IMG/VR virus record: IMGVR_UViG_3300050120_000361
Location: 1 to 64,000 of that record
Reading direction: 5' to 3' (one strand)
Length of the DNA: 64,000 nt
The first letter of the stretch is position 1. Every line of letters begins with the position of its first letter. Below the pieces are notes generated by a model. That model saw only the letters and a list, made by a program, of their open reading frames with translations. It was not told the DNA's origin and ran no database searches. The translations under genes were made by a program, and so were the position numbers. Positions 1,223-53,600 of this stretch are shown one piece after another.

Positions 1223-1432
1223 TCAGGCGGACACGTACTCGGCGCTCTTTGCGGGGTCGCCGTAGAAGACTACCTGGTTCTTCAGGGAGTCCACTATCTG
1301 GACCACCTCATAGCCCACGCACGGAAGGGCCGCGAGCCCGGCGTCGACGGCCTTGTCGTGGCTGCTGTGGAAGTCCCCGAAGCCGCCCATAGGCTCTCCA
1401 GGGTTGAACTTGAATACCCAAAACCTTTTCAT
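1223..1432 (-). CDS. hypothetical protein
   Basis: 69 aa, ATGA-coupled to upstream gene. Confidence 0.75.
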   Translation of the reverse strand: MKRFWVFKFNPGEPMGGFGDFHSSHDKAVDAGLAALPCVGYEVVQIVDSLKNQVVFYGDPAKSAEYVSA

Positions 1433-1827
1433 AATTTCTTTTCGTTTATTGTTACAAGTCTACCAAGATTAACTCCTTTGTTAAGGTCTGCTGTCATGCC
1501 ACTCGTTACTGTGGTGTTACGCATTACCATTGCAACGCCGTATCTTTCAATTTCCTTGTAGTTAGCAATTCCAAAAAGTAGTACAGCAGTTGTCTTATCA
1601 GCGGCTTTGTCATAAGCTTCGCCAAAAGCCTTACAGAGCTTGGCGAGCTGTTCATCCACTTTGTCGCGAATGTGCGGTTTTGCGTACTTATTAAGCAGAA
1701 GCCATTCCTTGATTTTCCTGCTCTTATCGTCCTTGTTTAGCTCTTCCTTGAACTTTTCCTGGGCTTTATCCCAGTTAGCATCGGAAACCTTATGCTCCCT
1801 TCCGCTTATCAATATAATGTGGCTCAT
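1429..1827 (-). CDS. hypothetical protein
   Basis: 132 aa, ATGA overlaps both sides. Confidence 0.75.
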   Translation of the reverse strand: MSHIILISGREHKVSDANWDKAQEKFKEELNKDDKSRKIKEWLLLNKYAKPHIRDKVDEQLAKLCKAFGEAYDKAADKTTAVLLFGIANYKEIERYGVAMVMRNTTVTSGMTADLNKGVNLGRLVTINEKKL

Positions 1828-5254: not shown

Positions 5255-5650
5255 TTAATAGGTCCGTTTGTGGTTTTCCTTGAGGTATGCTATGACCTCT
5301 TCGAAAGTGCCTATCAGGACGGGCATTTTGCGTAGGTTGTTCACGTCGCATGCGGAACTGTCTCCCGTATATGTTCCGATATAAACCTCAAAGCCTTTCG
5401 CGTATACGCAAATCTGTCCCTCATTTCCGCCAAGAGACACGTCTATTGAGTGTTCGGAAGTTCTTCCGACATCCTCGAAACCCTCATCGTAGAACTTTTT
5501 GCGAAGCTCATCCGTGAATTTTTTCGAAGCACCTGTGAGCTTTTCTATATTCTCTTTGGTATCGTATTGCGGATAGTATTCCCATGCGCGTCTTTCCTGC
5601 ATGCGGTTCCATCCATTTTCTCGACTTTCGTCAAATGGCACTACTTTCAT
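5255..5650 (-). CDS. hypothetical protein, first gene of cassette array
   Basis: 131 aa; ATG 5650 lies just downstream of promoter motif. Confidence 0.75.
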   Translation of the reverse strand: MKVVPFDESRENGWNRMQERRAWEYYPQYDTKENIEKLTGASKKFTDELRKKFYDEGFEDVGRTSEHSIDVSLGGNEGQICVYAKGFEVYIGTYTGDSSACDVNNLRKMPVLIGTFEEVIAYLKENHKRTY

Positions 5651-5677
5651 GATTTGTCTTGTTTTCTTATATTGTAC

Positions 5678-5705
5678 ATATCCCATAAACGTCCGTATTA
5701 TAGGG
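5678..5705 (-). promoter_or_regulatory. phage promoter-like motif
   Basis: CCCTATAA-N13-GGGATAT. Confidence 0.75.
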
Positions 5706-5737
5706 CATTCGTTACGTTTCGACAAGCGTCCGCCCAA

Positions 5738-6023
5738 GCGCACCGGTGCAACGGGCCTTTTTGACGGCACGCCTTGGCAAATGGCTTGGAATATCCCGAA
5801 AGTACCGTATTATTGCGTATTTTCCGGTGCGCCGGGTTGTTGCTCCCCATGGCTCGGGTGCGTCGAATTGAATGCCCGTAATGTATGGGTTTCAGTGGGA
5901 TATGCCATGTTTTGGGAACCTTTCAATTGTGCGCACCGGATATGGAGGCCATTCGGCCGTTATCCTTGGCAAATGCCTTTGCGGTTTTGTGGGAACCCCT
6001 TATTGTGGCATTGTCCGGTGCGC
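5738..6023. repeat. five-site inverted-repeat module A
   Basis: GCGCACCGG 5738, CCGGTGCGC 5824, CGGGTGCGT 5855, GCGCACCGG 5931, CCGGTGCGC 6015 (spacing 86/31/76/84). Confidence 0.9.
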
Positions 6024-6074
6024 ATTGGCGGAACGGGCAATAGAAAAGTCCCAATTGGGACTTGAATGCGAATG

Positions 6075-6227
6075 CTATTTAACTGTCAAATGGAACACCG
6101 CCCTGCAAACCTCCTTGATATGGAACATGTCATGCTCGTGCAAATCAATGGACAAATAGCCGAATGTTAGGGAAACGATGATTTCGAAAAGGGATTTAGT
6201 TGTTTGTTTCTTGATTAGTTTCTGCAT
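6075..6227 (-). CDS. hypothetical protein (50 aa, MQKLIKKQTT...)
   Basis: read by hand; has its own promoter motif at 6277-6303. Confidence 0.6.
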   Translation of the reverse strand: MQKLIKKQTTKSLFEIIVSLTFGYLSIDLHEHDMFHIKEVCRAVFHLTVK

Positions 6228-6276
6228 GACGTTTGGGTTTTAGTTTATGATAAATGATTGTTTTCTTATATCATTT

Positions 6277-6303
6277 ATATCCTGAAACTCCAAACATTAT
6301 AAG
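6277..6303 (-). promoter_or_regulatory. phage promoter-like motif
   Basis: CTTATAA-N13-AGGATAT. Confidence 0.7.
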
Positions 6304-6354
6304 ATAATCGAGCATTATCCGCAATATATGCCCAATACCTTATTGCACAACTGC

Positions 6355-6448
6355 GCGCACCGGATACGGGACCAAAACAGGGGCTGTCCTTGACTAATGC
6401 CTTGCCAAACAGTTTGGCCTGCATTCTGACGATAAGTTTCCGGTGCGC
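6355..6448. repeat. single 94-bp inverted-repeat unit
   Basis: GCGCACCGG 6355, CCGGTGCGC 6440 (spacing 85); central AATGCCTTGCCAAAC. Confidence 0.9.
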
Positions 6449-6468
6449 ATGCGGCCTATGGGCAAAAT

Positions 6469-6501
6469 AAAAGGGTCACCGAACTCGCTTCGGGACCCTT
6501 T
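6469..6501 (-). terminator. intrinsic terminator of 126-aa gene
   Basis: AAAGGGTC...GACCCTTT stem with sense-strand U tract. Confidence 0.65.
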
Positions 6502-6545
6502 CAACCTAAACCTTATCACAATCTGCGGCGGTTGCCGCATTCTCT

Positions 6546-6926
6546 TTATGCTACGACCAATTCGGCTTTTGCGGCTTTGGCTTTCGCCTTTGAAGCGCGG
6601 CTTGCCTTGTTGCGGGCCAAACGTGCTTTCTTTTCTTCAGGAGTTTCAACTTTTGCAACTGTTTCGATAACTTCAACCTTGTGGGTTACGGGAACGATTT
6701 TCGCAAGCATTGCGTCCTTAACGCTGTTGGTTGCGGCTTCGATGAACAGGCCCTTGAAAACAGGCAGTTCGATAACGTCTTCTGAACCAGCTTCGATACG
6801 GTCAGCGATTTCGAATGCAACGTCTTTTTTGATGCTCAAACGTTTTGCGGTTGCAACTACGAAGTTTAATTTTGCGCCGAATGATTTAGTTGAATACAAT
6901 GCGGCTGATTTGAATGATGCTTTCAT
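6546..6926 (-). CDS. small protein with Lys/Ala-rich C-terminal tail (putative DNA-binding)
   Basis: 126 aa; tail KKARLARNKASRASKAKAKAAKA; monocistronic. Confidence 0.7.
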   Translation of the reverse strand: MKASFKSAALYSTKSFGAKLNFVVATAKRLSIKKDVAFEIADRIEAGSEDVIELPVFKGLFIEAATNSVKDAMLAKIVPVTHKVEVIETVAKVETPEEKKARLARNKASRASKAKAKAAKAELVVA

Positions 6927-6979
6927 GATTTTAATTTTTTAAGTTTGTTTAAATAATTTGTTTGTTTCTTATGATAATT

Positions 6980-7007
6980 ATATCCTGAAAACCCAAACAA
7001 TATAGGG
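6980..7007 (-). promoter_or_regulatory. phage promoter-like motif
   Basis: CCCTATAT-N13-AGGATAT. Confidence 0.75.
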
Positions 7008-7041
7008 AATACGGGAAAATAGTTCATATAGTTATGCTTAC

Positions 7042-7329
7042 GCGCACCGGTACATCATGAATTATTGGTTGTATGCAGGGCATTTGGCAACCAATCCCGA
7101 ATACATGGCCTTTTCTGTTCCCAATACCGGTGCGTACGGTTGCGTACCAATAAGGTACTGGTGCGCGCGGTTGTATCGATTATTCAATGGGAATATCGGG
7201 CATTGCATGGCAAACGGAAACCAATTGCGTTCCATGCGCACCAGACAGTCATTGAATATCTGCCATTGACAAGGCATTATGCCTGATGGTTCCAATACGG
7301 TCCCAATACGGTCAACAGTGCCGGTGCGC
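7042..7329. repeat. five-site inverted-repeat module B
   Basis: sites at 7042(R), 7127(L), 7158(L), 7236(R), 7321(L); spacing 85/31/78/85. Confidence 0.9.
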
Positions 7330-7347
7330 GCGAACGGCCGTATACAG

Positions 7348-7372
7348 AAAAAGCCCGACTTTCGTCGGGCTT
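7348..7372 (-). terminator. intrinsic terminator of 253-aa gene
   Basis: AAGCCCGAC-TTTC-GTCGGGCTT with sense-strand U tract. Confidence 0.75.
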
Positions 7373-7403
7373 AATCTTCATTAGTCAGTTAATTGTTTCT
7401 TTA

Positions 7404-8165
7404 TTACAACGCCTCGATTGCAACGGTTTGCTTAACCGAAAGAGGGATAAGGTATGCCTTCAATGAAGCGTTGCCGTCATTGGCATCCTTGAATTTGATT
7501 TTGGCCTCTTCGAAAGCCGCAACGGGAACGTCGTATATTTCGCCGTCGATTTGCAGCGGTTTTGTAACGACTTTGGTAGATAGCGGTTTGCGGGGTTTGT
7601 AGTAGGTTTTGGCGTAGCGTATACGGTCAATACCTGTTTGCATTTCGGCGATGATGTCAACCTCTTTGGCAAGTTCAACTTGCATGTAGACATCGGCAGC
7701 GTAGCCCTTAGCAGCGGCCTCGTCGTCAATCATTTTCTTGATTGCTGTACGGGCGGGCTTAACTTCCCACCATGAAGACAACAGCAACAGGAGAGGATTG
7801 ATTGATTGGCCTGCAATCTGAATGGTTGAGATAACCTTCAAACCGTCCAAAATCTTAGGCTCGCGCTCTTTGTCGTATTTGGACGATGCAACGGTCTCGT
7901 TGATATAGTCCAATGGGCTGTGAGCTTCCAACCATTCGCGGTCCGTGAACTGCGGAGTGTTTTCATCAACAACGTGCATTGACAAATTGCCTTGCGCGGC
8001 GTCTTCCAGGTCATTTCCAAGCTCGGGGTCAGCGGCGCCAGCGTTTGGCTGTTCGTTCTGAGCTCCTTCGTTTTGCTCGTTTTGTGCGCCTTCTTTGTTG
8101 GCTGCTACTGATTGGTTTTGTTGTGCTTTAGCGGCTTTTTCAGCGGCTCTGTTTTTGTTTGACAT
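7404..8165 (-). CDS. early paralogue-family protein (253 aa), acidic/disordered N-terminus
   Basis: C-terminal half aligns with 11584-12150 and 12210-12524. Confidence 0.8.
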   Translation of the reverse strand: MSNKNRAAEKAAKAQQNQSVAANKEGAQNEQNEGAQNEQPNAGAADPELGNDLEDAAQGNLSMHVVDENTPQFTDREWLEAHSPLDYINETVASSKYDKEREPKILDGLKVISTIQIAGQSINPLLLLLSSWWEVKPARTAIKKMIDDEAAAKGYAADVYMQVELAKEVDIIAEMQTGIDRIRYAKTYYKPRKPLSTKVVTKPLQIDGEIYDVPVAAFEEAKIKFKDANDGNASLKAYLIPLSVKQTVAIEAL

Positions 8166-8206
8166 GACTTTAATTTTTGGATTGATTAATTTGTTTCTTA
8201 TTTACT

Positions 8207-8235
8207 GTATCCCAAAAATGATGGAATTATAAGGG
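8207..8235 (-). promoter_or_regulatory. phage promoter-like motif
   Basis: CCCTTATAA-N13-GGGATAC. Confidence 0.7.
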
Positions 8236-8299
8236 ATTTGGAAAGTTTTTTCGTTTTGTTTTCGTTTAGATGTTCAAATCCTCATCGCTTATATTATAT

Positions 8300-8326
8300 A
8301 TATCCCAAAAAACGTTATTATATAGG
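8300..8326 (-). promoter_or_regulatory. phage promoter-like motif (tandem with 8207)
   Basis: CCTATAT-N13-GGGATAT. Confidence 0.75.
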
Positions 8327-8369
8327 AATATCGGAAACTTTGTGCTAATAGGCAGTTATGGACAGTCGC

Positions 8370-8657
8370 GCGCACCGGTTATTCGGCATATTTTAAGGTT
8401 GTGCAAGGCATTTATCCTCATGGCTTTCCTACACGGCATTCAATAAATAGTGTTCCGGTGCGCTTGGATGTTATAGTCTTTGCGGGCCGGTGCGCCGGGT
8501 TGAGCCTCCAAAACTGAAAAAGCCCCTGTTTCCCAAGCATTTTTGGCATACCGACAGCATCTATGCGCACCGGATATTATCCGATAATCCAGAAACCGTT
8601 GGCATTCATCAGGGCTTTAACAGTATTCGGAGGCTTCCGCAGGATTGTCCGGTGCGC
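8370..8657. repeat. five-site inverted-repeat module C
   Basis: sites at 8370(R), 8455(L), 8487(L), 8565(R), 8649(L); spacing 85/32/78/84. Confidence 0.9.
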
Positions 8658-8670
8658 ACAGCACAACAAA

Positions 8671-8699
8671 CCCTATAAGTATTGGCGTCCAACGGATAT
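8671..8699 (+). promoter_or_regulatory. phage promoter-like motif
   Basis: CCCTATAA-N14-CGGATAT, 13 bp from module C. Confidence 0.7.
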
Positions 8700-8722
8700 A
8701 ATTTCTGTTAAAACTTACGAAC

Positions 8723-8947
8723 ATGCAACAGCACACAACCTCAGAACTAATCGACCATTTGGCCCATATCATATATGATTTGGGATGGCCCATAGTAATA
8801 CCAATAATCATACTCGCTCTGGTGCTGATGGCTCTGGTGCGCGTACTGAGATTGATATTCAAAATCCCTATATTAACATGGATTTTCGGATATATAATAT
8901 ACAAGAGAACATCAAACAAAGACAAACAACCAAAATGGAAACAATAA
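8723..8947 (+). CDS. small membrane protein
   Basis: 74 aa, long hydrophobic stretch then basic tail. Confidence 0.65.
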   Translation: MQQHTTSELIDHLAHIIYDLGWPIVIPIIILALVLMALVRVLRLIFKIPILTWIFGYIIYKRTSNKDKQPKWKQ

Positions 8948-9180
8948 CCAAAATCGTAGACGGTCTGAAAGGCCAGCCAATCTACATACAAGCAGCAGCA
9001 ATCCTTTTCGCATTAGCGTTGGGACTTTTCATCGGATTGCTGCCAAAAGTGATACTCGTTGACATCATGGGATTGCCGTTCAATCCACCAAAACTGAAAT
9101 TCTTAGGGGCCAACAGAGCCCCTAAAATTTTGCCTGTTCGGAGCGTGCGCACCAGCGCACGCTCCCAGAGCATCGTGTAA
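8935..9180 (+). CDS. small membrane protein
   Basis: 81 aa from ATG 8935; one or two hydrophobic segments. Confidence 0.6.
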   Translation: METITKIVDGLKGQPIYIQAAAILFALALGLFIGLLPKVILVDIMGLPFNPPKLKFLGANRAPKILPVRSVRTSARSQSIV

Positions 9181-9238
9181 TTAAATTGCCTTGGCAAACG
9201 CCCGCAAATACGGCAATAATTGGAAATGCCCGGTGCGC
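9147..9238. repeat. single 92-bp inverted-repeat unit
   Basis: GCGCACCAG 9147, CCGGTGCGC 9230; central TTGCCTTGGCAAAC; left arm inside hairpin GAGCGTGCGC/GCGCACGCTC. Confidence 0.85.
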
Positions 9239-9253
9239 GTGAATGTCTTAAAT

Positions 9254-9281
9254 CCCTATCTTTTCGGCTTGCATGGGATAT
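9254..9281 (+). promoter_or_regulatory. phage promoter-like motif
   Basis: CCCTATCT-N13-GGGATAT. Confidence 0.7.
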
Positions 9282-9306
9282 AGGAAACTAAGAAACATAC
9301 AATAAC

Positions 9307-9582
9307 ATGGAAGACAACACGAAAACAGACAGCACCGAGCAAAAAGCTCAGGTGGAAATTGGGCCAATGCCCACGCTGCACGAGGACATGGTGCTCACTT
9401 GGCAGGAGGCCGACATGCTCGCCGCTTTCAGGCTGATGGGACTTACCCCAGAAACGGTGGTAGTCCTCATAAGGGGCACGATTGACATACTGTCAATAAG
9501 GACGGGCGGAACGGAGCAAATCAGGCTTCTTACCCAAAAGGAGAACCTCAGCTCACTGTTGAACCTTTTAACGGTAAAATAA
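9307..9582 (+). CDS. hypothetical protein
   Basis: 91 aa, follows promoter. Confidence 0.75.
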   Translation: MEDNTKTDSTEQKAQVEIGPMPTLHEDMVLTWQEADMLAAFRLMGLTPETVVVLIRGTIDILSIRTGGTEQIRLLTQKENLSSLLNLLTVK

Positions 9583-10129: not shown

Positions 10130-10651
10130 ATGAAAAAGACAAGACCATCGCACTTCACGAATTACCCGTGGAGCAGCGTAAAGCAGAAATCCGAATGGGA
10201 GTCGATAGCGCAGAACATCATGAGAGTGATGTCAGAGCACGGCAACGACTTCTCGATAGGCCTCAGCCTGGAACAGTACACCGCCTACAGGGAAAAGGAG
10301 GGCGGTTCGGTGCGCATCTCCCAAGAGAGTTTTGATGAACTTATGGAGTACTGCAAAAGCGCTGAAACGGCTAAGCTGTTCAGTAAGGACTGGAAAGACG
10401 GCGTGCACATGGAAGTATTCGGCAACGACGAAAAGACCTCCAATGAAGACCATAACTCTCGCGAGATAAGCGTTGTAATGACTGTTGGGAACCGCGGGCT
10501 CATTGAAGCCGCCTTGAACCATTACTGGAACGACGCCAACGCCAACCTGCAGCGCAGCGACCTGGGCGACCTTGAGCGCTTTATGTACGAAAAGACCAAG
10601 ACATCCACAAAGGAATTGCTAATGGTTATTGACCTAAACTGGTACCTGTAA
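10130..10651 (+). CDS. hypothetical protein
   Basis: 173 aa from ATG 10130; HFTNYPWSSV motif. Confidence 0.75.
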   Translation: MKKTRPSHFTNYPWSSVKQKSEWESIAQNIMRVMSEHGNDFSIGLSLEQYTAYREKEGGSVRISQESFDELMEYCKSAETAKLFSKDWKDGVHMEVFGNDEKTSNEDHNSREISVVMTVGNRGLIEAALNHYWNDANANLQRSDLGDLERFMYEKTKTSTKELLMVIDLNWYL

Positions 10652-10655
10652 ACAT

Positions 10656-11372
10656 ATGGAACTTTCAAAGAAAGAACAGGACCTGATGCTCAGAGCATTG
10701 GGTTTCCTCCGCAAGGCAATGGCGTGTTCGGAAGAGCAGGAAGACCTGGAAAACGAAAAGGCCCTGGCATCGATGATGGTTTCCGTTAAGGAGGCGCCAA
10801 CCTACGAGAGCACCTCGCGCTACCAGATAGCATCCTTCAAGGAGGACAAGCAACTGATGGTGATGCTCCACAGGGACCTGCTCGCGGCTCTGAAGCCTAT
10901 TGACAGGAAGTACGGCGTTAGGATAACTGGCGGAACGCTCAGGTATGAGGACAAGGGTTTCGGATTGCGCCTGCAGTGCGTGATACCAGCAGGGAGCATG
11001 GAACAGCTCGTAGCGGGGCTCCGCGAGGGCGACCAGTTCAAGCGCAAGGGCACCATATTCACGGTAACATCGATAGACCATCAAACAAAAAAGGTTTCGG
11101 CAATCACCGAGCGCAGGAAGCGGTACCTTGTAAGGTTCGACCAGCTGATGCAGATGATTAAGGTTGAGCGTTTCGCCGGCGGCGCGATGGCCTTTAAGGA
11201 GCTTCAGACATTCGTCAACGTTTCAGAGGCAACCAGGGATGTTGACCAATTGGACTTCGCGAACCTGCCCGTCGGGGACGGAAACGGTGAGATTGTCGTT
11301 GACGAGCCGCTAAAGAAGAAGCTCCTGATTAATGGCAAGCTTTGGAACGTGGACGACATAGAGGTTATCTGA
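10656..11372 (+). CDS. hypothetical protein
   Basis: 238 aa; ends DDIEVI. Confidence 0.8.
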   Translation: MELSKKEQDLMLRALGFLRKAMACSEEQEDLENEKALASMMVSVKEAPTYESTSRYQIASFKEDKQLMVMLHRDLLAALKPIDRKYGVRITGGTLRYEDKGFGLRLQCVIPAGSMEQLVAGLREGDQFKRKGTIFTVTSIDHQTKKVSAITERRKRYLVRFDQLMQMIKVERFAGGAMAFKELQTFVNVSEATRDVDQLDFANLPVGDGNGEIVVDEPLKKKLLINGKLWNVDDIEVI

Positions 11373-11583: not shown

Positions 11584-12150
11584 TTACAATACCTCTACGC
11601 CTTCGTTCTTTTTGGTGTTCGGGTCTGCTAACAATGCAGCGCGTTTCGAAGCTGCGTCCATACCTGACAGTGATGCCAAGAAGTCTGCCGATACTTCGTA
11701 AAGGTCGCCGCTGATGCTTACCTGGATCAGTTTTGTTTTCGCGGTTGTTGCGCGACGGGCGTAGAATGATTTTACGTTGTTCAGCGTTGAAGCCGCTTTC
11801 TGCAAGCCATTGATAACTGCCAATTCTGTTTGGAAGTCGCCGTCGATGTAATTTTTGAACTCTTCCGAACCGCCGAAGCTTTCGATAACCGAAGCCTTAA
11901 CCGGAGCTGAAGCGTCTTTGTCATGCCATACCGGCACCAGGCTCAATACCTTCGCGAAGTTAGCGCTAACGCCGAACTCGTTGATTTTGGCAACTGCAGC
12001 TGTAAGGCCGGCAATTTCTTCAGGGGTTAATTCTTTCGGCTCTTTTGAGCTTTTCTTGGTTTCAGTACCTTCAGCCGGTGCTGTTGAAGTTTCCAAATCG
12101 GAAACGTTTAATTCCTGGTCTTCAGCAGGAGATTGTGCGTCGTTTGACAT
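11584..12150 (-). CDS. early paralogue-family protein (188 aa)
   Basis: aligns with 7404-8165. Confidence 0.8.
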   Translation of the reverse strand: MSNDAQSPAEDQELNVSDLETSTAPAEGTETKKSSKEPKELTPEEIAGLTAAVAKINEFGVSANFAKVLSLVPVWHDKDASAPVKASVIESFGGSEEFKNYIDGDFQTELAVINGLQKAASTLNNVKSFYARRATTAKTKLIQVSISGDLYEVSADFLASLSGMDAASKRAALLADPNTKKNEGVEVL

Positions 12151-12578: not shown

Positions 12579-12606
12579 TTATCCTTGAAAAGGAATTAAT
12601 ATAGGG
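12579..12606 (-). promoter_or_regulatory. phage promoter-like motif
   Basis: CCCTATAT-N13-AGGATAA. Confidence 0.7.
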
Positions 12607-22427: not shown

Positions 22428-22454
22428 ATATCCTGCGGAGCGGATATTTATAGG
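22428..22454 (-). promoter_or_regulatory. phage promoter-like motif
   Basis: CCTATAA-N13-AGGATAT. Confidence 0.8.
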
Positions 22455-28619: not shown

Positions 28620-30698
28620 CTATTGTTCTACCAGTCCTACCACGGAAGTGTACCCGTTCTCCCACTCCCGCTGCTGGTCTGGGTGCTGGTACGGGTTGAA
28701 CGCTATCCCGTTCTGTCCGTCCTCAACACCCTTGTTGAATGCTATGTCCTTGTACCTCTGGCCGTTCTTCTCGCCTATCCCCCACCCCTGCAGCCATATA
28801 GAGTGCTTGAGCGGCTCCAAAACAACATTGAACGGGTTCTCGTCATCGGTTATGTAGCCCTCTATGCCGGCCTCTATGATCTTCTCCTTCTCGCCGGGCT
28901 CCATTATCAATAGCTCGTCCTTTGCCCTCTCCTCAGCCAGCTGCCAGCCGTCGGCCCACAGCTCGAACTCTTCGGTTGACTTCGCCCTGTCATACGGGTT
29001 CTCGTTCTTGTTGGCGAGAGACTGCACGTAGGCGGTGAAGCCCTCGCACTCAGGGGGCTGAAGGTCCGACAGGCCCATAGTCCTCCTGACGCCCTTTTTA
29101 GGCAGCGTGTCCTCGGCGCGCAGAAGGGAGCATTCGTATATGAAGCCCTGGTCCCATGCCGCGGATGGAGTAAGCAGCCCCTTGCCCAAATCGTCGGTAT
29201 TGCCGAAAGGGTTCTGGTCGAGCGAGCCTCCGTGCTGCTTCCATATCCTGCCGCCCTCGAAGTGCCAGTTCATCTTGTCCTGGTAGCGGGCGTTCCTGCA
29301 GAGCTCTGACTTTGACGCGAGCAGCCACCCCTCCTCCCAGGCCTTAGCGGCCTCGTCGCTCGTGTATGGGTTGTCATCCAAGTCCTTACCCTCCGAGTAG
29401 GCGCCGTGCCCGGTGTGGAAGGCGTTCTCCTGGAACTGCGTGCGGTTGCCGGACTCCTGCTTGGTGTATGCCGCCAGGAACTCGTTGTGCCTGTCTTCCC
29501 AGCCGCGCGTCCATATAGCTATCCGCTCATCCCCGTCCAATGGGCATTCTGTGAGCTGCATTCCTTCAGCGTACTGCCTGCGCCCCATCTCGTACAGTGA
29601 GCTTTCGATAGGCCTTTCGCGCTTGGACTCCGTTTCCCTGCACACCGCATCTGCGGACTTCCAGCCAAGGTCCCACTCGCCCACGAAGCCTATGGCCTTT
29701 ATGGTTTTCATGAAGTCCTTGGCGTAAACCGTGTTCTCTACGAGGTGCGGGTTCGAGCACCTGCGCATGTCGTTGAAGCGGGCCTCGTATCCTGCCTGGA
29801 ACTGCTCAGGCGCGTCCTTTTCGTACACTGGAACCTCGCCAATCACCTTCTTCTCCATTGAGTCGAAACGCTCGGATATGTCCTTGTCGAAAAGTGAACG
29901 CTTTCCCCACCCGGCATTCCACGACTGCCATACGAATGTGTCCAAATCGGACTTGAAAGGCTCGTCACCGACACCGAATGGATTATCCGCTTTTGTAAGC
30001 CCCCTGTCGTACGCCCTCTTGCCCATGTCCCCACAAATAGTGCCAATCTCCCCAGCGGTTTTGTCATTGATGGCGTTCCACATATTCCTAAGCTGTCTGA
30101 GGGTCTTTATCTCCGAATTCGAGAAGGTGAACTCGATGCTGTCGGCGTCAACAAGCCCGATAAGAGGCGTTGCCTTTTTGGACATGAACTCCTTTTCCAT
30201 GGCGGAATTGTTGGCCACGTGCCATCCGTCAGCCCAGTTGGTGGCTGCGTTGTCCTTGGCGTCCGGCGTAACTATCCACGGATTGTCGGTAAGCGCCTTG
30301 CCGGCAACGAACGCCCGCTGGCCCTCATTGTACTGGTTCCCATTGTCCCACCCGATCGACCACATCTTCTGCATCATGCCAGGCCCGAATGGGTTCTTGA
30401 ACTTGTCAATGCCCGTAATAACGGCATCCTTCCAGCCACGAGCCTTGGCCTCGGCGTACTTCTCCTCATTCGCGTTGCGAGGGTTCTCGATGTCAAGCAC
30501 CACCTGACGCTCAACCACATCCGGCTGTATGCTTCCAGCTATCTGGTTCAGAATGTCCTGCTTTGAGTGCTCCATTATGCCGAGTATCTCGTATGGAGTG
30601 AACCCGTCGTTGCGGCGCTTGATGCTCATTGCGCCCTCGCCGTCCTCAACGCTCATGGTGTACACGCGCTTTTTGCTGTCCTTGTTTTCTTTGTCCAT
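28620..30698 (-). CDS. protein with 10 RMF/CrpP-like repeats
   Basis: 10x G-x(8-12)-[NC]P[FYW]-x(7-25)-W-x2-G[WFY]. Confidence 0.75.
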   Translation of the reverse strand: MDKENKDSKKRVYTMSVEDGEGAMSIKRRNDGFTPYEILGIMEHSKQDILNQIAGSIQPDVVERQVVLDIENPRNANEEKYAEAKARGWKDAVITGIDKFKNPFGPGMMQKMWSIGWDNGNQYNEGQRAFVAGKALTDNPWIVTPDAKDNAATNWADGWHVANNSAMEKEFMSKKATPLIGLVDADSIEFTFSNSEIKTLRQLRNMWNAINDKTAGEIGTICGDMGKRAYDRGLTKADNPFGVGDEPFKSDLDTFVWQSWNAGWGKRSLFDKDISERFDSMEKKVIGEVPVYEKDAPEQFQAGYEARFNDMRRCSNPHLVENTVYAKDFMKTIKAIGFVGEWDLGWKSADAVCRETESKRERPIESSLYEMGRRQYAEGMQLTECPLDGDERIAIWTRGWEDRHNEFLAAYTKQESGNRTQFQENAFHTGHGAYSEGKDLDDNPYTSDEAAKAWEEGWLLASKSELCRNARYQDKMNWHFEGGRIWKQHGGSLDQNPFGNTDDLGKGLLTPSAAWDQGFIYECSLLRAEDTLPKKGVRRTMGLSDLQPPECEGFTAYVQSLANKNENPYDRAKSTEEFELWADGWQLAEERAKDELLIMEPGEKEKIIEAGIEGYITDDENPFNVVLEPLKHSIWLQGWGIGEKNGQRYKDIAFNKGVEDGQNGIAFNPYQHPDQQREWENGYTSVVGLVEQ

Positions 30699-41738: not shown

Positions 41739-44700
41739 TCAGTTTATGTCTATGTACATGGAACCCTTTTCTGAGGGGATTACTTGAAACGCATGAGTCT
41801 CGAACATCTGCTCGAGGTTGTGGTCTATTACAAAGAGGTTCTTGGACTCAAAGCGGTTCAGAAGCGTTATGAACATCTCCTGATAATTCACTATATTCTC
41901 CTTTTTAGAGAGTTCTTTGCCGCTGTTGAGCTGACCCGAGAGCTCGTCTATGAATATGCATGAAACACTGTTCTTGACATTCAGGGTGGATATGGCGTAT
42001 ATTAGCGCAAGTCCCTGGAATGCTGTTTCCATGCCTGATACGAGCTGAACCGGCCTGAATACGGCGTGGCCGTCTTTCATCTCCACCATGTAAAGCTCGC
42101 CGCTCTCGTCCCAGAACAGTTTGAAGCTGAGCCCCTCAAGCAGCAGGTTGAGCGTGTTGTTCAAAAAGCTCCTGTAGTAGTTGAACACTATGTCCTTAAA
42201 GTCCCGCTTGATGAGCTTCTCGTATATCGCAAAAACCATGGACTTGCGCTGCCACTCCACGTACTCTCTGATGAGCTTCTCATTGGACTCTATCTTGAGT
42301 TCGTGCCTTTGGAGCGCGAGGCTGTGCTGCGCCCGTTGCGTGTTCATGACCGACATTGACTCGTTTTCGTCTCGCTCATTCCTTTCTTGCTCGTCAAGCC
42401 CGGCCACCGCCTCATCCCACATAGGCTCCTTAAGCCTCAGGTTTTCAAGAGTGGATGCCTCCAAAGCGTGTGTCTGCTTCAGCTGGTCAATGCTACGGTT
42501 GTGCTCATCGACAGTGAGGTTGTGCCGGCGCACGGCGTCCAAGGCTTCGTTGTGCGTCTTTAGCCTGTCGCCGTATGACTTCAAATCCTTTGAGTACTTT
42601 TCCGTGGCTTCGGTTGCCGCCCTGACTATTTTCTCAATGCCCTGGTACAGCAGGGCCATCTTGTCTGATGAGTCCTTTGCGCCTTTGGTCCACATATCCA
42701 ATTTGGCCTTGGCACCGGCCTGCTCATCGAACACCAGCAGTGTGGCGTCCTTTCGCAGGGTCACCTCCCGAAGCGCGGCGAGCTTGGTAAGCCTTGCGGT
42801 AATCACGTCCAATTCGATGTACAGGTTCTCATCGGCGCTGTAGTCCTTCTTCTGCTCCTTAGCGGCTTCGGCCGTTGTTTTGAGCCTGTTCCACTTGTCC
42901 CTTGCAGTCACGGTCGCGACAGCCAATGGGCGTATCGCGTCATTGTAGGACGCGTGCTCAGCAAGCACTGTATTCCAGTCGCTTTCAGCCGAGGCCACGC
43001 TTGCAAGTATTCCGTAGGTGTCGACATGCGTCTTCGCCGCTGCGGCGAGGCTTTGCTGCTTTTCCAGTTCAGGAGTGATTTGCGTCAACTCTATCACTAT
43101 CGCCTCATTGTCGTCCTTTAGCCGCTGCTTGAGAACCTCCCAATGCCCGGCATCCCCTGATATTGGTTTATTGCAGGTGGGGCATATGCCCGACTCGAGC
43201 TGATTTTTGTTGGAAGACAGCCTGTCGCTGAGCGCTTTCTGCCTGTCCTTGATTTCCTGGACCTTCTCATTGAATGTCTTTTCCTTGGCCTGCAGGACTT
43301 CGTGCGTTTCCCTCACCGCATCGAGGTAAGCGCCACCTGCGGTGTCAAGCTCTATTTTTGCGGTTGCCGCTGCATTGGCGTAGTCCTGTTCGATGCGCCA
43401 GTACTCCTTTGTAACCTCCTCCCAGCCTCCGTCAATTTCCGCTTGTGTCTGCTTCTCGAGGATGTCCCACATGGCGGCTATGTCATCAGCGTATGCTTCA
43501 TTTACCGTCTTCAGCGCGCCTATTTCATCAGCAAGTATTTCAATCTCTTCCTTATCAGCTTCTTTGGTGTCAGGCTCAATTGGCTCGGTTTCAGTGAATA
43601 TCGGCTCTTCCCGCTTTTCCCTGCTTTCGAATGAGTCCACGGCCGCCTTGGCGTTATCCACCTTGACCTGCTGCTCCTTAATGAGCGTTGGCACGTTGCC
43701 CAATTCGAGCTTTTTCTGGTGGCCCTCGGCTATTGCCCGCCTTATGTGATTGAGCCTGTTTTCTGTGAATGCCTTGGAGTCGTCGAGCAGCTCAATTTTG
43801 TTCTGGGCGGCGTTCCTGTCGGCAATCGCCATTATTATCTCCTCCTTGAGCTGGGTCATGTTCACCTTTGGCTTAACGAGGTCGTAGTATGACTTGACCG
43901 ACGCGAGGTTGCCTTCAAGCACCTGCAGGTAGTCTACGCCTATGTAGTTCAGGACCATTTGGGTCAGCTCCGCGGGCGGCATGTTCAGCATCGACAGTAT
44001 CTTCGCCTGGTTCAGTATCATTATGGTATTCGGAACCTCACCGAACCATCTGTCCAATAGCTGCTGGGCCTCGTCGCCTATCTTCTCCACTGGCTCCGCG
44101 CCCTCCTTGTGAACCTGAAGCTTCAGGTTCCGCGTCACGCCGCTCACGTACTGCTTCCAATTCAGGGAGCGCTTCATCTCGTCTGTGGTGTTCTGCTTCC
44201 ACGCGCGCTGCGCCCAGCGTATCGCGTGCACCTTTGTGCCGTTTGCGCGGAATATGAGCCTTACCATTATGGTGTCAATCTCCGGAAGCTTGTCGTTGAA
44301 CAGGTGCAGTGAGTTCTGAACCTTCTTGGCCTTCGGCATGCCCTCCATTATCTCGTCCTTCAGCACCCACCGCAGCATATTGTACATGGTGGTCTTGCCT
44401 ATTCCATTGGTGCCGGTTATGCGTGTCAGTCCTGGTATGTTCAGCTTTATCTTGTTTTTGCCGAGGGCCATGAAGCAGTTGCACTCGATGCTCTCGAGCT
44501 CGTTCACGTAGTTTGAGGTCTTGGTCAATGAGTTCGAGAGTTGCTCAGAGAACAATTGCCTTATCTCGGCCAGTATCTCATTGACGTCCTCCTCCTCAAC
44601 GAACTCCTTCTCAATCGTTTTCTTGTGTCCTTCGAGCACCTTGACGAACAGTGCGTGCAGCTTGGCCTCATCGAGTACCATCTCATCCATGGTTTCTTCA

Positions 44701-45827
44701 GGCTCTTCACCCTCTCCTTCCGTAACGGCCTCAGTAGGTTGGACTTCGCTTTGGTTCATTACGAACTTGTCGTACTGGCAGTTAACTGAAACGGTTCCCA
44801 TCCGCTGCGAGCCGAGCTCGTGCGTCACGCGTATCAGTTCGAGCTCGTGCTTTGAGTAGGTGCTCGAGAGCTTGAACTTTATGAACGTGTTGCACGTTCC
44901 CCAAACGCTGTCGAGCCTGAGCACCGCGAGAACCTGCTGCAGCCAGTTCTCAGAAACCGATGAGGTAGTCATGTCGAACGTCACGTAGCTTATCAGGTTT
45001 GTAAGCGGCTCATCCCTTACGGTCCATGAGCCGTTCTCGATGTCTATTATCTTGACTACCTTTTGGTCGCCTACCGCCAGTCCGGGCTTGTTGCGGACCT
45101 TGGCGAATGTGCCCTCGGAGTGGTCGCGCTGTATAGGCGAGCCTGGATATATGAAGGTTTTGGACTTGTCGATGCTCTGGACCGTCCAGTTCACGTGAAT
45201 GTCCCCTGCGAGGGTAAGCGTGGAGAGGAAGTCCTCAACGGACGCGAGCCTCTCGTACCTGTCCTTCTTTACCGGAAGCTTTGTGGCGTCAACGTACTCC
45301 CGCAGAATGTCGTGGTACACGCATATGTTGAAGGTGTAGGGGTCTATGCCTTCCGCCTTGATGTTAGCCCCGTTTGACGGCCCGTCCTCCAAAGAGTAGG
45401 AAATCCATCCGAGCCCTTCAACCCGTGACCTGTAGTACCGCTGCTCCTTCAGGTAGGTCACCTTCTTGCTGAGCTCGGGCTCAAGCTTGTCTATGAACGA
45501 CTTGAACGTGTCAACGGCGTTGTGCCCCTTCTCGGCCTCAAGCGCCTTCCGCATGTCGTGAAGGTCGTGGTTGCCGTTCATTACGCAAATCTCAACCAGG
45601 GTGGGTATCGCAAGGCATTCTGACAGGTGGTTGTATATCGCCTTCTTCTCAGCGTCATTCGAGGCCGCATACTCCGTAAGGTCGCCGGCCAGCAGGTATA
45701 CCTCAACGCCCTCGCGAACGATAATGTCCCGTATCTCCGCAAGCACAGAGGCGTACGGCTTGGTCAGGTCCCGCTCGCGCAGCTTGACCTGGATGTCTGC
45801 TGTGTGCAGTATTCTTGTTTTCAGCAT
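41739..45827 (-). CDS. fused SbcD/Mre11 nuclease - SbcC/Rad50 ATPase (gp47-gp46-like)
   Basis: HTADIQ, AGDL, GNHD, AGDIH; GTNGIGKTT, coiled coil with CPTC hook, VSGME signature, FIDE Walker B. Confidence 0.9.
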   Translation of the reverse strand: MLKTRILHTADIQVKLRERDLTKPYASVLAEIRDIIVREGVEVYLLAGDLTEYAASNDAEKKAIYNHLSECLAIPTLVEICVMNGNHDLHDMRKALEAEKGHNAVDTFKSFIDKLEPELSKKVTYLKEQRYYRSRVEGLGWISYSLEDGPSNGANIKAEGIDPYTFNICVYHDILREYVDATKLPVKKDRYERLASVEDFLSTLTLAGDIHVNWTVQSIDKSKTFIYPGSPIQRDHSEGTFAKVRNKPGLAVGDQKVVKIIDIENGSWTVRDEPLTNLISYVTFDMTTSSVSENWLQQVLAVLRLDSVWGTCNTFIKFKLSSTYSKHELELIRVTHELGSQRMGTVSVNCQYDKFVMNQSEVQPTEAVTEGEGEEPEETMDEMVLDEAKLHALFVKVLEGHKKTIEKEFVEEEDVNEILAEIRQLFSEQLSNSLTKTSNYVNELESIECNCFMALGKNKIKLNIPGLTRITGTNGIGKTTMYNMLRWVLKDEIMEGMPKAKKVQNSLHLFNDKLPEIDTIMVRLIFRANGTKVHAIRWAQRAWKQNTTDEMKRSLNWKQYVSGVTRNLKLQVHKEGAEPVEKIGDEAQQLLDRWFGEVPNTIMILNQAKILSMLNMPPAELTQMVLNYIGVDYLQVLEGNLASVKSYYDLVKPKVNMTQLKEEIIMAIADRNAAQNKIELLDDSKAFTENRLNHIRRAIAEGHQKKLELGNVPTLIKEQQVKVDNAKAAVDSFESREKREEPIFTETEPIEPDTKEADKEEIEILADEIGALKTVNEAYADDIAAMWDILEKQTQAEIDGGWEEVTKEYWRIEQDYANAAATAKIELDTAGGAYLDAVRETHEVLQAKEKTFNEKVQEIKDRQKALSDRLSSNKNQLESGICPTCNKPISGDAGHWEVLKQRLKDDNEAIVIELTQITPELEKQQSLAAAAKTHVDTYGILASVASAESDWNTVLAEHASYNDAIRPLAVATVTARDKWNRLKTTAEAAKEQKKDYSADENLYIELDVITARLTKLAALREVTLRKDATLLVFDEQAGAKAKLDMWTKGAKDSSDKMALLYQGIEKIVRAATEATEKYSKDLKSYGDRLKTHNEALDAVRRHNLTVDEHNRSIDQLKQTHALEASTLENLRLKEPMWDEAVAGLDEQERNERDENESMSVMNTQRAQHSLALQRHELKIESNEKLIREYVEWQRKSMVFAIYEKLIKRDFKDIVFNYYRSFLNNTLNLLLEGLSFKLFWDESGELYMVEMKDGHAVFRPVQLVSGMETAFQGLALIYAISTLNVKNSVSCIFIDELSGQLNSGKELSKKENIVNYQEMFITLLNRFESKNLFVIDHNLEQMFETHAFQVIPSEKGSMYIDIN

Positions 45828-51983: not shown

Positions 51984-53600
51984 TTAATCCTCGATCGCTT
52001 TCCAGTAGGATTTGCGCTTGCCGAGCGTTAGCCTGTTCTGACGCTCAAGACCTGTGGACATTATCAGCTTGGGGTCGTTGGTCATTAGGTTGGTGAAGCG
52101 CATGCCCTCCTCGTTGTTCAGCTTGTTCGGGTTGAGCGTGCCTGAAACAACCACGTCTATTATGTCGTTCTTTGATATTTCGTGCGCAGCTATCACGTCG
52201 AACATGTGCGTTATTACCGGAACGCAGTAGTTGGAGTAGTGCTTCACCAGCGATGCCCGGCCAATATCCTCAATGGCCCAGATGTCCTTCTCCACGCCGA
52301 AGACGCAGTACCCGCGCTCTATCAGGTAACGTGCCGCATTGGCCTTTCCGAGAACCTTCTCAACGGTGCGTATCACGCGGTTGTCAGTCATGAAGTCCTC
52401 GACAATCCTCACGTTCGCGAAGTGCCCTTTGAAGCTCACCCTGGTGAGCGTGCCGTAATCGTTCATGCGCCGGATGCACACTATGTCCCTGTAGGTCGTG
52501 TCGAGCATTGTGGTCAGAAGCGATTTGAGCACGTTCCTGTCGTACTCGTACTGCGAAGGGACCTTCCAGCGGGCCCAGTCTATTTGCGCCCTTATGGATG
52601 GCACCAGGTGCTCCTCGGCTATGAAGCACTCGTGGCTGTTGGCGAGGTAGTCCTTTCCTATCACGCCGTTTGTGGAGTGCACCCGTATCGTGAACTTTGA
52701 GGTGTATATGTAGAACTCGCGCGGGAACACGTATATGGAGTACTGACCCCTGTCGCCGTTGAACATCTGCACCAGGCACTTGTCAAGGGCCTCGTACAGC
52801 CGGTTCTTCATTGCCTCGGTCTCCTTCCACCAGGCGTGCAAGGTGTCGAGCTGCTGCTCCGATATGGCCACGGATGTCTTGGTGAATTTGGCGCAGGCCT
52901 GCGCGAGCTTCCTGTTTGATGTCGTGTCGGAAACCCATGTGGCCCTGAAGCCGAATGTGCCGCAGCGAAGCGCTGAGTATTCCATGAACTTGGCGAAAGC
53001 GGGCAGCTTGTAGAGTATGGGCCATGCGGACTGTAACAGTGACATGCCGTTCTTCGGCTTTGTCATCCTGCCAACAACCCCGCTTCCCCAGCCGTAACCC
53101 AGCTCAAATGGGGTGCTCTGCGGGCCGCTCATGGCGGCGCACCATATCCTGGTCGGTGTCATCTCCAGTTCCCAAACAACCTTATCGAGCCCCTTATTCA
53201 CCAGCGCCTCTTCCACGCGCACGTAGTGCAGGAACACCATGGTGCAGTACGCCATTATGCGGTCGTACTGGCGCAGGTTGCACATGAGCATGTTCTCGAA
53301 CGTGGCGTAGAGCTCCCGAAGGTCGCCTCTCACGTAGGCGTCCTTTTCCGCATCGGTTATTGTCGCGTTTATGAAGGGCTTTACCCGGAGATAGTCCGTG
53401 TCTTCAAACAGTAGTGGATTGTTCGTTATTAGCGATGACCACCTCCAGTCAAAGCCCTCTACCTTGTCGAAGTTGCTGGCGATGAAGTCGCCTACGTTCT
53501 TTACGTATTTCGTGTTTTCGAGGCTTGAGGACTCGAAAATAGAGCGCATGCTGATGACCTTTTCGCGGTCGGTCAGCAAGGCCTCCTTCTCATTTGACAT
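51984..53600 (-). CDS. hypothetical protein
   Basis: about 538 aa, no motif recognised. Confidence 0.8.
   Translation of the reverse strand: MSNEKEALLTDREKVISMRSIFESSSLENTKYVKNVGDFIASNFDKVEGFDWRWSSLITNNPLLFEDTDYLRVKPFINATITDAEKDAYVRGDLRELYATFENMLMCNLRQYDRIMAYCTMVFLHYVRVEEALVNKGLDKVVWELEMTPTRIWCAAMSGPQSTPFELGYGWGSGVVGRMTKPKNGMSLLQSAWPILYKLPAFAKFMEYSALRCGTFGFRATWVSDTTSNRKLAQACAKFTKTSVAISEQQLDTLHAWWKETEAMKNRLYEALDKCLVQMFNGDRGQYSIYVFPREFYIYTSKFTIRVHSTNGVIGKDYLANSHECFIAEEHLVPSIRAQIDWARWKVPSQYEYDRNVLKSLLTTMLDTTYRDIVCIRRMNDYGTLTRVSFKGHFANVRIVEDFMTDNRVIRTVEKVLGKANAARYLIERGYCVFGVEKDIWAIEDIGRASLVKHYSNYCVPVITHMFDVIAAHEISKNDIIDVVVSGTLNPNKLNNEEGMRFTNLMTNDPKLIMSTGLERQNRLTLGKRKSYWKAIED

Follow-up and report, generated by a model that had tools for sequence, protein, structure and literature searches.

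We find that a 3.5-kb stretch of an uncultured 208-kb phage carries eight DNA units of approximately 94 bp, conserved in relatives from 22% to 52% G+C, whose sequence indicates tightly bent, protein-bound DNA beside a phage-specific set of promoters. We found no published description of such an element. Our best reading, which we hold with only middling confidence and in which binding and function are inferred from sequence alone, is that these are protein-wrapped or looped architectural operators that control this promoter set.

The window we analyzed is the first 64 kb (64,000 nucleotides) of IMGVR_UViG_3300050120_000361 (208,538 bp). A preliminary description of it had noted a 9-mer and its complement occurring about 19 times and forming eight inverted pairs, and this observation proved to be real. 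GCGCACCGG and its complement give 14 exact matches in the 64 kb, all between 5738 and 9238, while shuffled sequences give a mean of 0.65 and a maximum of 3. Allowing one mismatch adds sites at 7127, 7158, 7236, 8834 and 9147 inside the region, for a total of 19, and one-mismatch hits elsewhere in the window are at chance density. The start-to-start distances of the eight pairs are 86, 84, 85, 85, 85, 85, 84 and 83 bp, exactly as described. In the whole record, exact units occur only in the first 13.4 kb.

Six of the units pair into three five-site super-modules of 286–288 bp (5738-6023, 7042-7329 and 8370-8657), with spacings of 86/31/76/84, 85/31/78/85 and 85/32/78/84. The super-modules had been called identical, but this is true of their geometry only and not of their sequence. 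The preliminary description also considered the spacers mostly unrelated, and this needs correction, because they share a central element and a phased A/T periodicity of about 10 bp. The parts of the array are as follows.

5738-5832, unit U1 (type 1, promoter-proximal for the minus-strand gene 5255-5650), arms at 5738-5746 and 5824-5832, central element at 5772-5789.
5855-5863, lone arm-like site (CGGGTGCGT, two mismatches; the middle site of the first super-module), 31 bp outside the distal arm of U1.
5931-6023, unit U2 (type 2, next to a terminator), central element at 5964-5981.
6355-6448, unit U3 (solo, between the terminator at ~6470-6500 and the promoter of gene 6075-6227), central element at 6388-6405.
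7042-7135, unit U4 (type 1, upstream of the promoter of the 126-aa gene 6546-6926), right arm with one mismatch, central element at 7075-7092.
7158-7166, lone site (CTGGTGCGC), 31 bp outside the distal arm of U4.
7236-7329, unit U5 (type 2, directly after the terminator at 7351-7372), central element at 7269-7286.
8370-8463, unit U6 (type 1, upstream of the two tandem promoters of the 253-aa gene), central element at 8403-8420.
8487-8495, lone site (exact CCGGTGCGC), 32 bp outside the distal arm of U6.
8565-8657, unit U7 (type 2, where transcription diverges), polarity facing the 253-aa gene, ending 13 bp from the plus-strand promoter at 8671, central element at 8597-8614.
9147-9238, unit U8 (solo, plus polarity, between the terminator at 9103-9125 and the promoter of gene 9307-9582), central element at 9189-9206.
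5655-5706, minus strand, promoter-class motif CYTATAWW-N13-GGATAT-N7-ATAAGAAAC for gene 5255-5650.
6254-6305, minus strand, same promoter class, for the 50-aa gene 6075-6227.
6957-7008, minus strand, same promoter class, for the 126-aa gene 6546-6926.
8186-8328, minus strand, two tandem copies of the promoter class (8186-8235 and 8279-8328) for the 253-aa gene; the tandem pair is conserved in relatives.
8671-8722, plus strand, weaker copy of the promoter class, for the 74-aa membrane-like gene 8723-8947.
9255-9300, plus strand, promoter class for gene 9307-9582.
7404-8165, minus strand, the 253-aa orphan protein.
6046-6063, minus strand, intrinsic terminator of gene 6075-6227, immediately before U2 in the direction of transcription.
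7351-7372, minus strand, intrinsic terminator of the 253-aa gene, immediately before U5.
9103-9125, plus strand, terminator-like hairpin immediately before U8.

We next looked for the same arrangement in relatives. The arm core C[G/A]CACC[A/G]G, an arm spacing of 81–87 bp and a lone site 28–33 bp outside recur in at least 12 related metagenomic phage loci, which we number L046-L049, L050-L054, L056, L057, L059/L062, L066, L206, L307 and L308. These loci range from 22 to 52% G+C, and the neighboring protein is 31–65% identical. A homologue of the 253-aa protein is encoded next to the array in every related locus, including loci that we found by DNA pattern alone. However, this protein is acidic (its C-terminal domain has a pI of ~5.3) and has no fold or sequence match to DNA-binding proteins. 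The neighboring ORFs scanned had no Pfam or PHROG hits, and no DNA-binding candidate emerged.

The spacers carry an A/T periodicity of 9.75–10.25 bp that is phase-locked to the arms in all four G+C classes (0/2000 shuffles each, Rayleigh z 12–24). It also holds in the window's own eight units (period 10.25, 0/5000 shuffles). A/T peaks lie at ~11, 21.5, 31.5, 40.5, 51, 61.5, 70.5 and 81 from the arm. Such a phased pattern is typical of tightly bent DNA, although A/T phasing alone cannot separate a loop from a wrap, or protein-induced from intrinsic curvature. The spacers also share a central element of 16–18 bp at a fixed position, 44–59 from the distal arm core. It is offset by +4 to +6 bp toward the promoter-proximal arm in 19 of 24 promoter-adjacent units. 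All putative contact points fall at -3, 0, +4, +5 and +8 helical turns, so they lie on one face of the helix.

Because the arms are complementary, we considered whether the units could be small structured RNAs or RNA processing hairpins closed by a 9-bp stem. Single-sequence folds do close with that stem, with z-scores of -1.3 to -3.2. However, there were no tRNA hits and no Rfam hits at gathering thresholds, and the interior folds differ in every unit. Arm mismatches are G-U compatible on the top strand in 12 units and on the bottom strand in 15, so there is no strand bias. The lone third site has no pairing partner, and a 10-bp A/T periodicity is a property of duplex DNA. We consider an RNA very unlikely. 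We think it at least as unlikely that these are MITE-like mobile elements that spread within the region, despite their terminal inverted repeats and uniform length of 92–95 bp. The mean column identity of 60% is driven by the arms, the interiors are unrelated apart from the central element, and no target-site duplications are evident. The copies are clustered rather than dispersed in the 208-kb genome, and unit positions are syntenic in relatives whose neighboring protein is only 31–65% identical.

The units are not promoters either. We found no consistent -10/-35 pair, as expected of a sigma-70 promoter, inside units of the G+C-rich clade. A sigma-54 promoter requires GG at -24 and GC at -12, exactly 12 bp apart (TGGCAC-N5-TTGCW). 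The central TGGCAA-N5-TTGC-like strings lose GG or GC, or shift by 1 nt, in every unit, and relatives have CAAGGYATATRCCTTG instead. What the units do show is an association with a conserved promoter class, as they generally sit between the terminator of one small gene and the promoter of the next. The promoter motif occurs 8 times in the window against 0.01 expected and is conserved in relatives. It starts ~35–40 bp outside the proximal arm, and the distance from that arm to the GGATAT box clusters at 58–68 bp, though it is not fixed (46–81 bp). Promoters of this class also occur without units, at window positions 8867, 12580 and 22429 and at several sites in L050, L052 and L053. In addition, at least two units (L066 5859 and L052 8965) lie between convergent genes with no promoter nearby, so a promoter-independent role is possible.

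In the explanation we favor, each unit is the DNA scaffold of a sequence-positioned nucleoprotein complex. A conserved protein, most likely phage-encoded, would recognize the asymmetric arm core, with the two inverted arms 8 helical turns apart and, in type 1 units, a third site 3 turns outside the promoter-distal arm. A dimeric factor would bind the central quasi-palindrome, which is CAAGGYATATRCCTTG in relatives and CCTTGGCAAATGCCTTG-like in this window. The 76-bp spacer, with A/T patches every ~10 bp, would be anisotropically bendable. On the usual rule that A/T minor grooves face the inside of a bend, the major grooves of all recognition sites would then face the inside of the curve, and the DNA would be wrapped around, or closed into a microloop by, the bound protein or proteins. 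With the proximal arm ~63 bp upstream of the GGATAT box and the units oriented with the gene, we propose that the complexes set the activity or timing of this promoter subset, which includes the doubly promoted 253-aa gene. The sites, their geometry, phasing, polarity and conservation come directly from our analysis, while protein binding, wrapping and a transcriptional role (whether activation, shut-off or insulation) are what we infer from them.

The earlier interpretation is partly supported. Its core inference, that a sequence-specific protein binds paired sites on one DNA face and loops or wraps the spacer, with geometry conserved rather than sequence, is strongly supported, though not proven. 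Of the roles it offered, an enhancer or insulator fits best, since the units sit between terminators and a phage-specific promoter class and have a polarity that follows the downstream gene. That the genes concerned are the first expressed remains an assumption. As to an injection-stop or packaging signal, the arrays are internal in other large contigs.

A related but unlikely possibility is that the same complexes act as insulators or topological barriers, which would separate neighboring, strongly transcribed monocistronic units and block read-through and the spread of transcription-driven supercoiling rather than regulate the downstream promoter. Units always follow a terminator or lie at a strand switch, super-modules fill terminator-to-promoter gaps, and the two units between convergent genes and the promoters without units also fit this view. 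However, unit polarity follows the downstream promoter, the proximal arm keeps a clustered distance to it, and many other gene boundaries in the window have no units.

We find it still less likely that the array is a nucleation or anchoring site for a genome-organizing or centromere-like protein. In this view it would mark one region of the phage chromosome for positioning, compaction or protection, with the 253-aa gene as part of the system. There is a single clustered array per genome, it co-occurs strictly with one orphan gene family, and the two-armed layout around a putative central bend site resembles, by analogy, P1 parS. However, we found no ParA/ParB-type or other partition domains in the 20 neighboring ORFs scanned, the units are interleaved one-to-one with promoters and oriented with them, and the 253-aa protein is acidic.

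A replication origin, in which the arms would be initiator-binding sites and the bent DNA would help to melt an adjacent A/T-rich region, also appears unlikely. The region has lower G+C than the rest of the window (0.45–0.46 against ~0.53) and lies at a divergent strand switch, and wrapped initiator complexes occur at other origins. However, iteron-type origins have tandem direct repeats about 2 turns apart in one compact locus next to an unwinding element. Here the sites are inverted, 84 and 31 bp apart, and the eight units are spread over 3.5 kb between genes. The GC-skew change simply follows the coding strand, and unit polarity tracks gene direction.

There is a more speculative reading, which we think improbable but cannot exclude, in which the units are sequence-programmed, nucleosome-like particles. 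A phage-specified protein core would wrap ~85 bp per unit, or ~150 bp where lone sites flank both arms, at exact positions set by the arms, the central element and the phased A/T. This would make a small stretch of "designed chromatin" that partitions the promoter-gene-terminator cassettes and gates a phage-specific RNA polymerase or sigma factor. It would be a new class of bacterial-virus DNA organizer with an unknown protein fold.

We regard the units as akin to looped-operator systems of the lac/gal type, whose two operators are separated by an integral number of helical turns, but the promoter motif here lies outside the unit and not within a loop. In the E. coli lac operon O3 - CAP site - O1 repression loop, the operators are ~92 bp apart (84–85 bp here), a dimeric bender site lies inside the loop, and function depends on helical phasing. 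The lac operators are palindromes and enclose the promoter, while here the arms are asymmetric 8-9-mers in inverted orientation, the spacer itself carries phased A/T, and there are eight copies. The gal repressosome (GalR at OE and OI with HU at the loop apex) is likewise a small loop closed by a regulator at two sites with an architectural protein near the apex. However, the gal loop is 113 bp and encloses the promoters, and HU binding there is not sequence-defined, while the central element here is a conserved quasi-palindrome placed 5 bp off the dyad.

The P1 parS centromere is a two-armed site of ~80–90 bp in which ParB-binding arms flank an IHF bend that brings them together on one protein complex. 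P1 has a single copy next to parA-parB, while here eight copies are interleaved with promoters and no partition genes were detected in the neighbors scanned. Compared by eye only with the IHF consensus (WATCAANNNNTTR), the central element contains TATCAA in A/T-rich relatives but mostly lacks the TTR part, and the G+C-rich clade has CCWWGG-type half-sites instead. In the phi29 p4/p6 switch at the early/late promoter region, phage-encoded proteins also bend promoter-region DNA into a defined higher-order complex, and binding depends on phased sites and on bendability. The p4 sites are different inverted repeats in one compact region, p6 reads bendability with a 24-bp repeat, and no homologues of either protein were detected here.

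E. coli BIME-1 / RIP elements are ~100-bp extragenic elements with two inverted REPs around a central IHF site, and they often follow terminators. REPs are themselves hairpin palindromes dispersed genome-wide, while here the arms are short and non-palindromic, and the units form one cluster and are oriented with promoters. Finally, in phiC31 many copies of one operator, the conserved inverted repeat (CIR), accompany a phage-specific, highly conserved promoter class in an early region built from promoter-gene-terminator units. The CIRs are single 17-bp palindromes, with no paired arms 8 turns apart, no phased spacer and no central element.

The 9-mer GCGCACCGG and its complement occur 14 times exactly in the 64-kb window, and all of these sites lie between 5738 and 9238. 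Dinucleotide-preserving shuffles of the window gave 0.65 occurrences on average and never more than 3. When we allowed one mismatch, five more sites fell inside the region (7127, 7158, 7236, 8834 and 9147), while elsewhere the density of one-mismatch sites was at chance. The sites form eight inverted pairs, which we refer to as units:

U1, 5738-5832
U2, 5931-6023
U3, 6355-6448
U4, 7042-7135
U5, 7236-7329
U6, 8370-8463
U7, 8565-8657
U8, 9147-9238

The start-to-start spacings within the units are 86, 84, 85, 85, 85, 85, 84 and 83 bp, so the observation in the preliminary description, which had reported exactly these spacings, holds. Three five-site super-modules (5738-6023, 7042-7329 and 8370-8657) are 286-288 bp long and align site for site, although the middle site of the first one (5855) has two mismatches. 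The window is the first 64 kb of a 208,538-bp IMG/VR contig, and exact units occur nowhere else on that contig.

The units lie in the intergenic gaps of a cluster of small orphan genes, none of which has a Pfam or PHROG match. The genes and the intrinsic terminators of this cluster are as follows:

5255-5650, minus strand, orphan gene
6075-6227, minus strand, orphan gene
6546-6926, minus strand, orphan gene encoding a 126-aa protein
7404-8165, minus strand, orphan gene encoding a 253-aa protein
8723 onward, plus-strand genes
6046-6063, intrinsic terminator
about 6470-6500, a further terminator identified by eye
7351-7372, intrinsic terminator
9103-9125, intrinsic terminator

Two small, hydrophobic, membrane-like proteins (8723-8947 and 8935-9180, plus strand) are encoded right after the point where transcription diverges. 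The second of these ORFs runs through a terminator-like hairpin and into the left arm of U8, so its true end is uncertain.

Each gene is preceded by a conserved three-part motif, CYTATAWW-N13-GGATAT-N7-ATAAGAAAC. The first two parts occur 8 times in the window against 0.01 expected. Five copies lie next to units on the minus strand, and the plus-strand copy next to U8 (9255-9300) was found by looser searches. Three further copies of CYTATAWW-N13-GGATA have no adjacent unit (12580-12605 and 22429-22454 on the minus strand, and 8867-8892 on the plus strand), so the motif class is used more widely than the units. The motif resembles neither the sigma-70 consensus nor the Bacteroidota consensus, and we treat it as a phage-specific promoter class, which is an inference from sequence alone. 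In the direction of transcription the layout is a terminator, a type-2 unit (the terminator-adjacent kind), about 67-78 bp (start to start), a lone arm-like site, 31 bp, a type-1 unit (the promoter-proximal kind), 30-60 bp, the putative promoter and then the gene. U3 and U8 are solo units between a terminator and a promoter, U6 and U7 sit where transcription diverges, and the 253-aa gene has two tandem promoters.

The wider window encodes phage replication and repair proteins. Its helicase is 26-30% identical to those of Sphingomonas phage PAU, Tenacibaculum phages PTm1, PTm5 and pT24, and Chryseobacterium phages MA9V-1 and MA9V-2. A 692-aa ORF (28620-30698, minus strand) contains a strong match to the ribosome modulation factor domain (PF04957, E 8e-23) at residues 425-458, which is an RMF-like module embedded in a large phage protein. 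A 1362-aa ORF (41739-45827, minus strand) combines an N-terminal calcineurin-like phosphoesterase with an SMC/RecF-type ATPase and looks like a fused SbcD-SbcC-like nuclease. A 446-aa protein (53590-54930, minus strand) has a BCS1 N-terminal domain plus an AAA ATPase domain, an unusual family for a phage.

We next looked for relatives. The 253-aa protein has 25 homologues in a collection of 5.8 billion proteins and 72 representative clusters (at 50% identity) in a library of 1.84 billion. This orphan family is found only in metagenomes: tblastn with three family members found none in 50,697 isolate-phage records, and blastn of the region against these records also found nothing. The first 50 kb of Tenacibaculum phage PTm1, the part that we scanned, has no array. 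The genomic contexts of the homologues, together with an independent DNA-pattern scan of IMG/VR, gave at least 12 distinct array loci, to which we gave handles beginning with L. Further pattern scans of genomes and metagenomes each gave at least 120 matches, filled with chance matches in high-G+C DNA, and among these only L206 was a new true array.

Array loci, with their G+C content and arm sequence.
Window and L046-L049; G+C about 0.5; (AT)GCGCACCGG
L056 and L059/L062; G+C about 0.4; TTACGCACCGGTAAA or TAACACACCGGCAAA
L057, L066, L206, L307 and L308; G+C about 0.3; similar to the 0.4 class
L050-L054; G+C 0.22-0.23; AATAC[G/A]CACCAGTAAA

The 8-bp core C[G/A]CACC[A/G]G is kept throughout, and so are the 81-87 bp arm spacing and the lone site 28-33 bp outside one arm. 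The same super-module order is seen in most loci, and the promoter motif is conserved in most clades. In genomes of 22% G+C these G+C-rich 10-mers are among the most frequent words in the locus. Every array locus, including those found by DNA pattern alone, encodes a homologue of the 253-aa protein next to the array, and no other protein of the window's first 20 kb is shared so widely. In other large contigs the array is internal, so its position near the start of this contig carries no meaning. In L052, a terminator plus type-2 unit is duplicated almost exactly in front of two different genes (10640-10773 and 11585-11717), so the cassettes spread by local duplication. Several metagenomic contigs (L046, L047, L049 and L054) end inside the array, and the repeated arms and duplicated cassettes probably break short-read assemblies at this locus. 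A mobile origin of the MITE kind was rejected because the interiors are unrelated, the units are clustered and their synteny is deep.

Interior sequences of the units are unrelated in the ordinary sense, but two features are conserved. The first is the A/T content of the spacer, which oscillates with a period of about 10 bp in a fixed phase relative to the arms, with peaks at about 11, 21.5, 31.5, 40.5, 51, 61.5, 70.5 and 81 bp from the start of the arm core. The amplitude exceeded all 2000 shuffles in each of four G+C classes, with Rayleigh z of 12-24 for phase coherence. The window's own eight units exceeded all 5000 shuffles and all 2000 sets of random window segments, with a period of 10.25 bp. 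Some units are recent duplicates, which makes these tests somewhat optimistic, but the signal is nonetheless present in every clade.

The second feature is a central element. Type-1 units carry a 16-bp quasi-palindrome, CAAGGYATATRCCTTG, at positions 44-59 from the distal arm core, and in the window it appears as CCTTGGCAAATGCCTTG-like strings. Its centre coincides with an A/T peak and lies 4-6 bp off the unit midpoint, toward the promoter-proximal arm, in 19 of 24 promoter-adjacent units. Several of the five exceptions are mis-detections, and others are the shared unit at the divergence point, which faces the 253-aa gene. The central motif at first appeared to occur in two orientations, which suggested an invertible promoter, but this is explained instead by the quasi-palindromic nature of the element and its fixed +5 bp offset.

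Measured from the centre of the distal arm, the lone site lies at -31 bp, the two central half-sites at +41.5 and +52.5 bp, and the proximal arm at +84 bp, which correspond to -3, +4, +5 and +8 helical turns. The arm centres lie about half a turn from the nearest A/T peak. If A/T minor grooves face the inside of a bend, as established for nucleosomal and CAP- or IHF-bent DNA, then the major grooves of all recognition sites face the concave side.

We considered whether the units could be promoters or RNA genes. A sigma-54 promoter in the unit centre was rejected on the spacing and identity of GG/GC, and on the different central sequence in relatives. A scan for sigma-70 promoters found TTGCCA-18-AATAAT in U4 and U8, but there is no consistent -10 across G+C-rich units, and this reading fails as well. 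The arms of the A/T clade (TAATACGCACCAG...) resemble T7-type promoters, but we set this reading aside because convergent promoters make no sense and it leaves the phased A/T unexplained. An RNA is unlikely, as Rfam and ARAGORN found nothing and folding both strands gave only the trivial closing stem, with no shared interior fold. In addition, G-U-compatible arm mismatches show no strand bias (12 against 15), the lone site has no partner, and a 10-bp A/T phase is a property of duplex DNA.

The most economical reading is a positioned nucleoprotein complex in which about 85-125 bp of DNA would be wrapped around, or closed into a microloop by, protein bound at the arms and at the central element. 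Three observations tie it to transcription: its place between terminators and the phage-specific promoters, the clustered distance from the proximal arm to GGATAT (58-68 bp), and a polarity that follows the gene. The sites, their geometry, phasing, polarity and conservation are shown by the analysis, while protein binding, the wrap or loop, and a role in transcription are inferred from sequence alone. The preliminary description had proposed that a protein binds paired sites on one DNA face and loops or wraps the spacer. This core inference is strongly supported, though not proven, and its interpretation as a whole is partly supported. Conservation of the arm core across a 30-point range of genome G+C argues for a conserved phage-encoded reader rather than a host factor, although this too is inference.

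We could not identify this protein among those encoded in the first 64 kb of the 208-kb genome, the part examined for proteins. The 253-aa family is the only constant neighbour. It has invariant WWEVKPAR and DRIRYAKTYFKPR motifs, but its AF2 model (pLDDT 77, with a disordered N-terminus) has no fold match in PDB or BFVD, its profile has no PDB sequence match, and the protein is acidic. It may therefore be the chief regulated gene rather than the binder, and we regard it only as associated with the array. The 126-aa protein was considered as an HU-like bender, but it has no Pfam, PDB or PHROG hit and its homologues occur only in the G+C-rich clade. The only neighbour with a DNA-binding-type domain is a 132-aa protein (1429-1827, minus strand) with an HTH_73 domain (E 8e-9). 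A homologue lies near the array in the closest relative's 196-kb contig, but none was seen in the other array loci.

An insulator or topological barrier is a serious rival to this reading. Units always follow terminators or sit at strand switches, and the same putative promoter class is found without units. In two relatives, units lie between convergent genes and their terminators with no promoter nearby (L066 5828-5950 and L052 8965-9053), which hints at a promoter-independent (boundary) role. A centromere-like or nucleation role fits the single cluster per genome and the strict link to one orphan gene, but it is weakened by the one-to-one, oriented association with promoters and by the absence of partition genes among the neighbours scanned. 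A replication origin is unlikely, because the sites are inverted and 84 bp apart, they are spread over 3.5 kb between genes, and the GC-skew change follows the coding strand.

If our reading is right, a whole uncultured clade of phages of about 150-210 kb, distantly related to PAU/PTm1-type jumbo phages, controls a cassette of small orphan genes with a stereotyped DNA micro-architecture. This architecture would have five major-groove contacts on one helical face, an 8-turn wrap and a sequence-encoded bend, with an arm core that stays the same while genome G+C swings from 22% to 52%. It would then be a natural, highly constrained test bed for the physics of sub-persistence-length DNA loops. It would also be a handle for finding the unknown regulator and RNA polymerase specificity factor of this phage group, because the arm 8-mer, its geometry and the promoter motif are precise baits. 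The motif grammar also works as a specific DNA signature for finding members of this clade in metagenomes.

Literature searches for the motif strings and for the concept found nothing relevant, and no paper in the library searched mentions the motif. Functionally, the nearest analogues are the lac O3-CAP-O1 loop and the gal repressosome, which have phased operators with a bender inside the loop; P1 parS, which has two arms around a bend; the phi29 p4/p6 complex; E. coli BIME-1/RIP elements; and the phiC31 CIR operators. The element fails defining features of each. Its arms are not palindromic and the proposed loop does not enclose the promoter, no partition genes were found among the neighbours scanned, and the arms are not hairpin REPs and the units are not dispersed. 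We therefore class it with looped or wrapped operators, as a new form that is set apart by these features and is carried by an uncultured phage clade.
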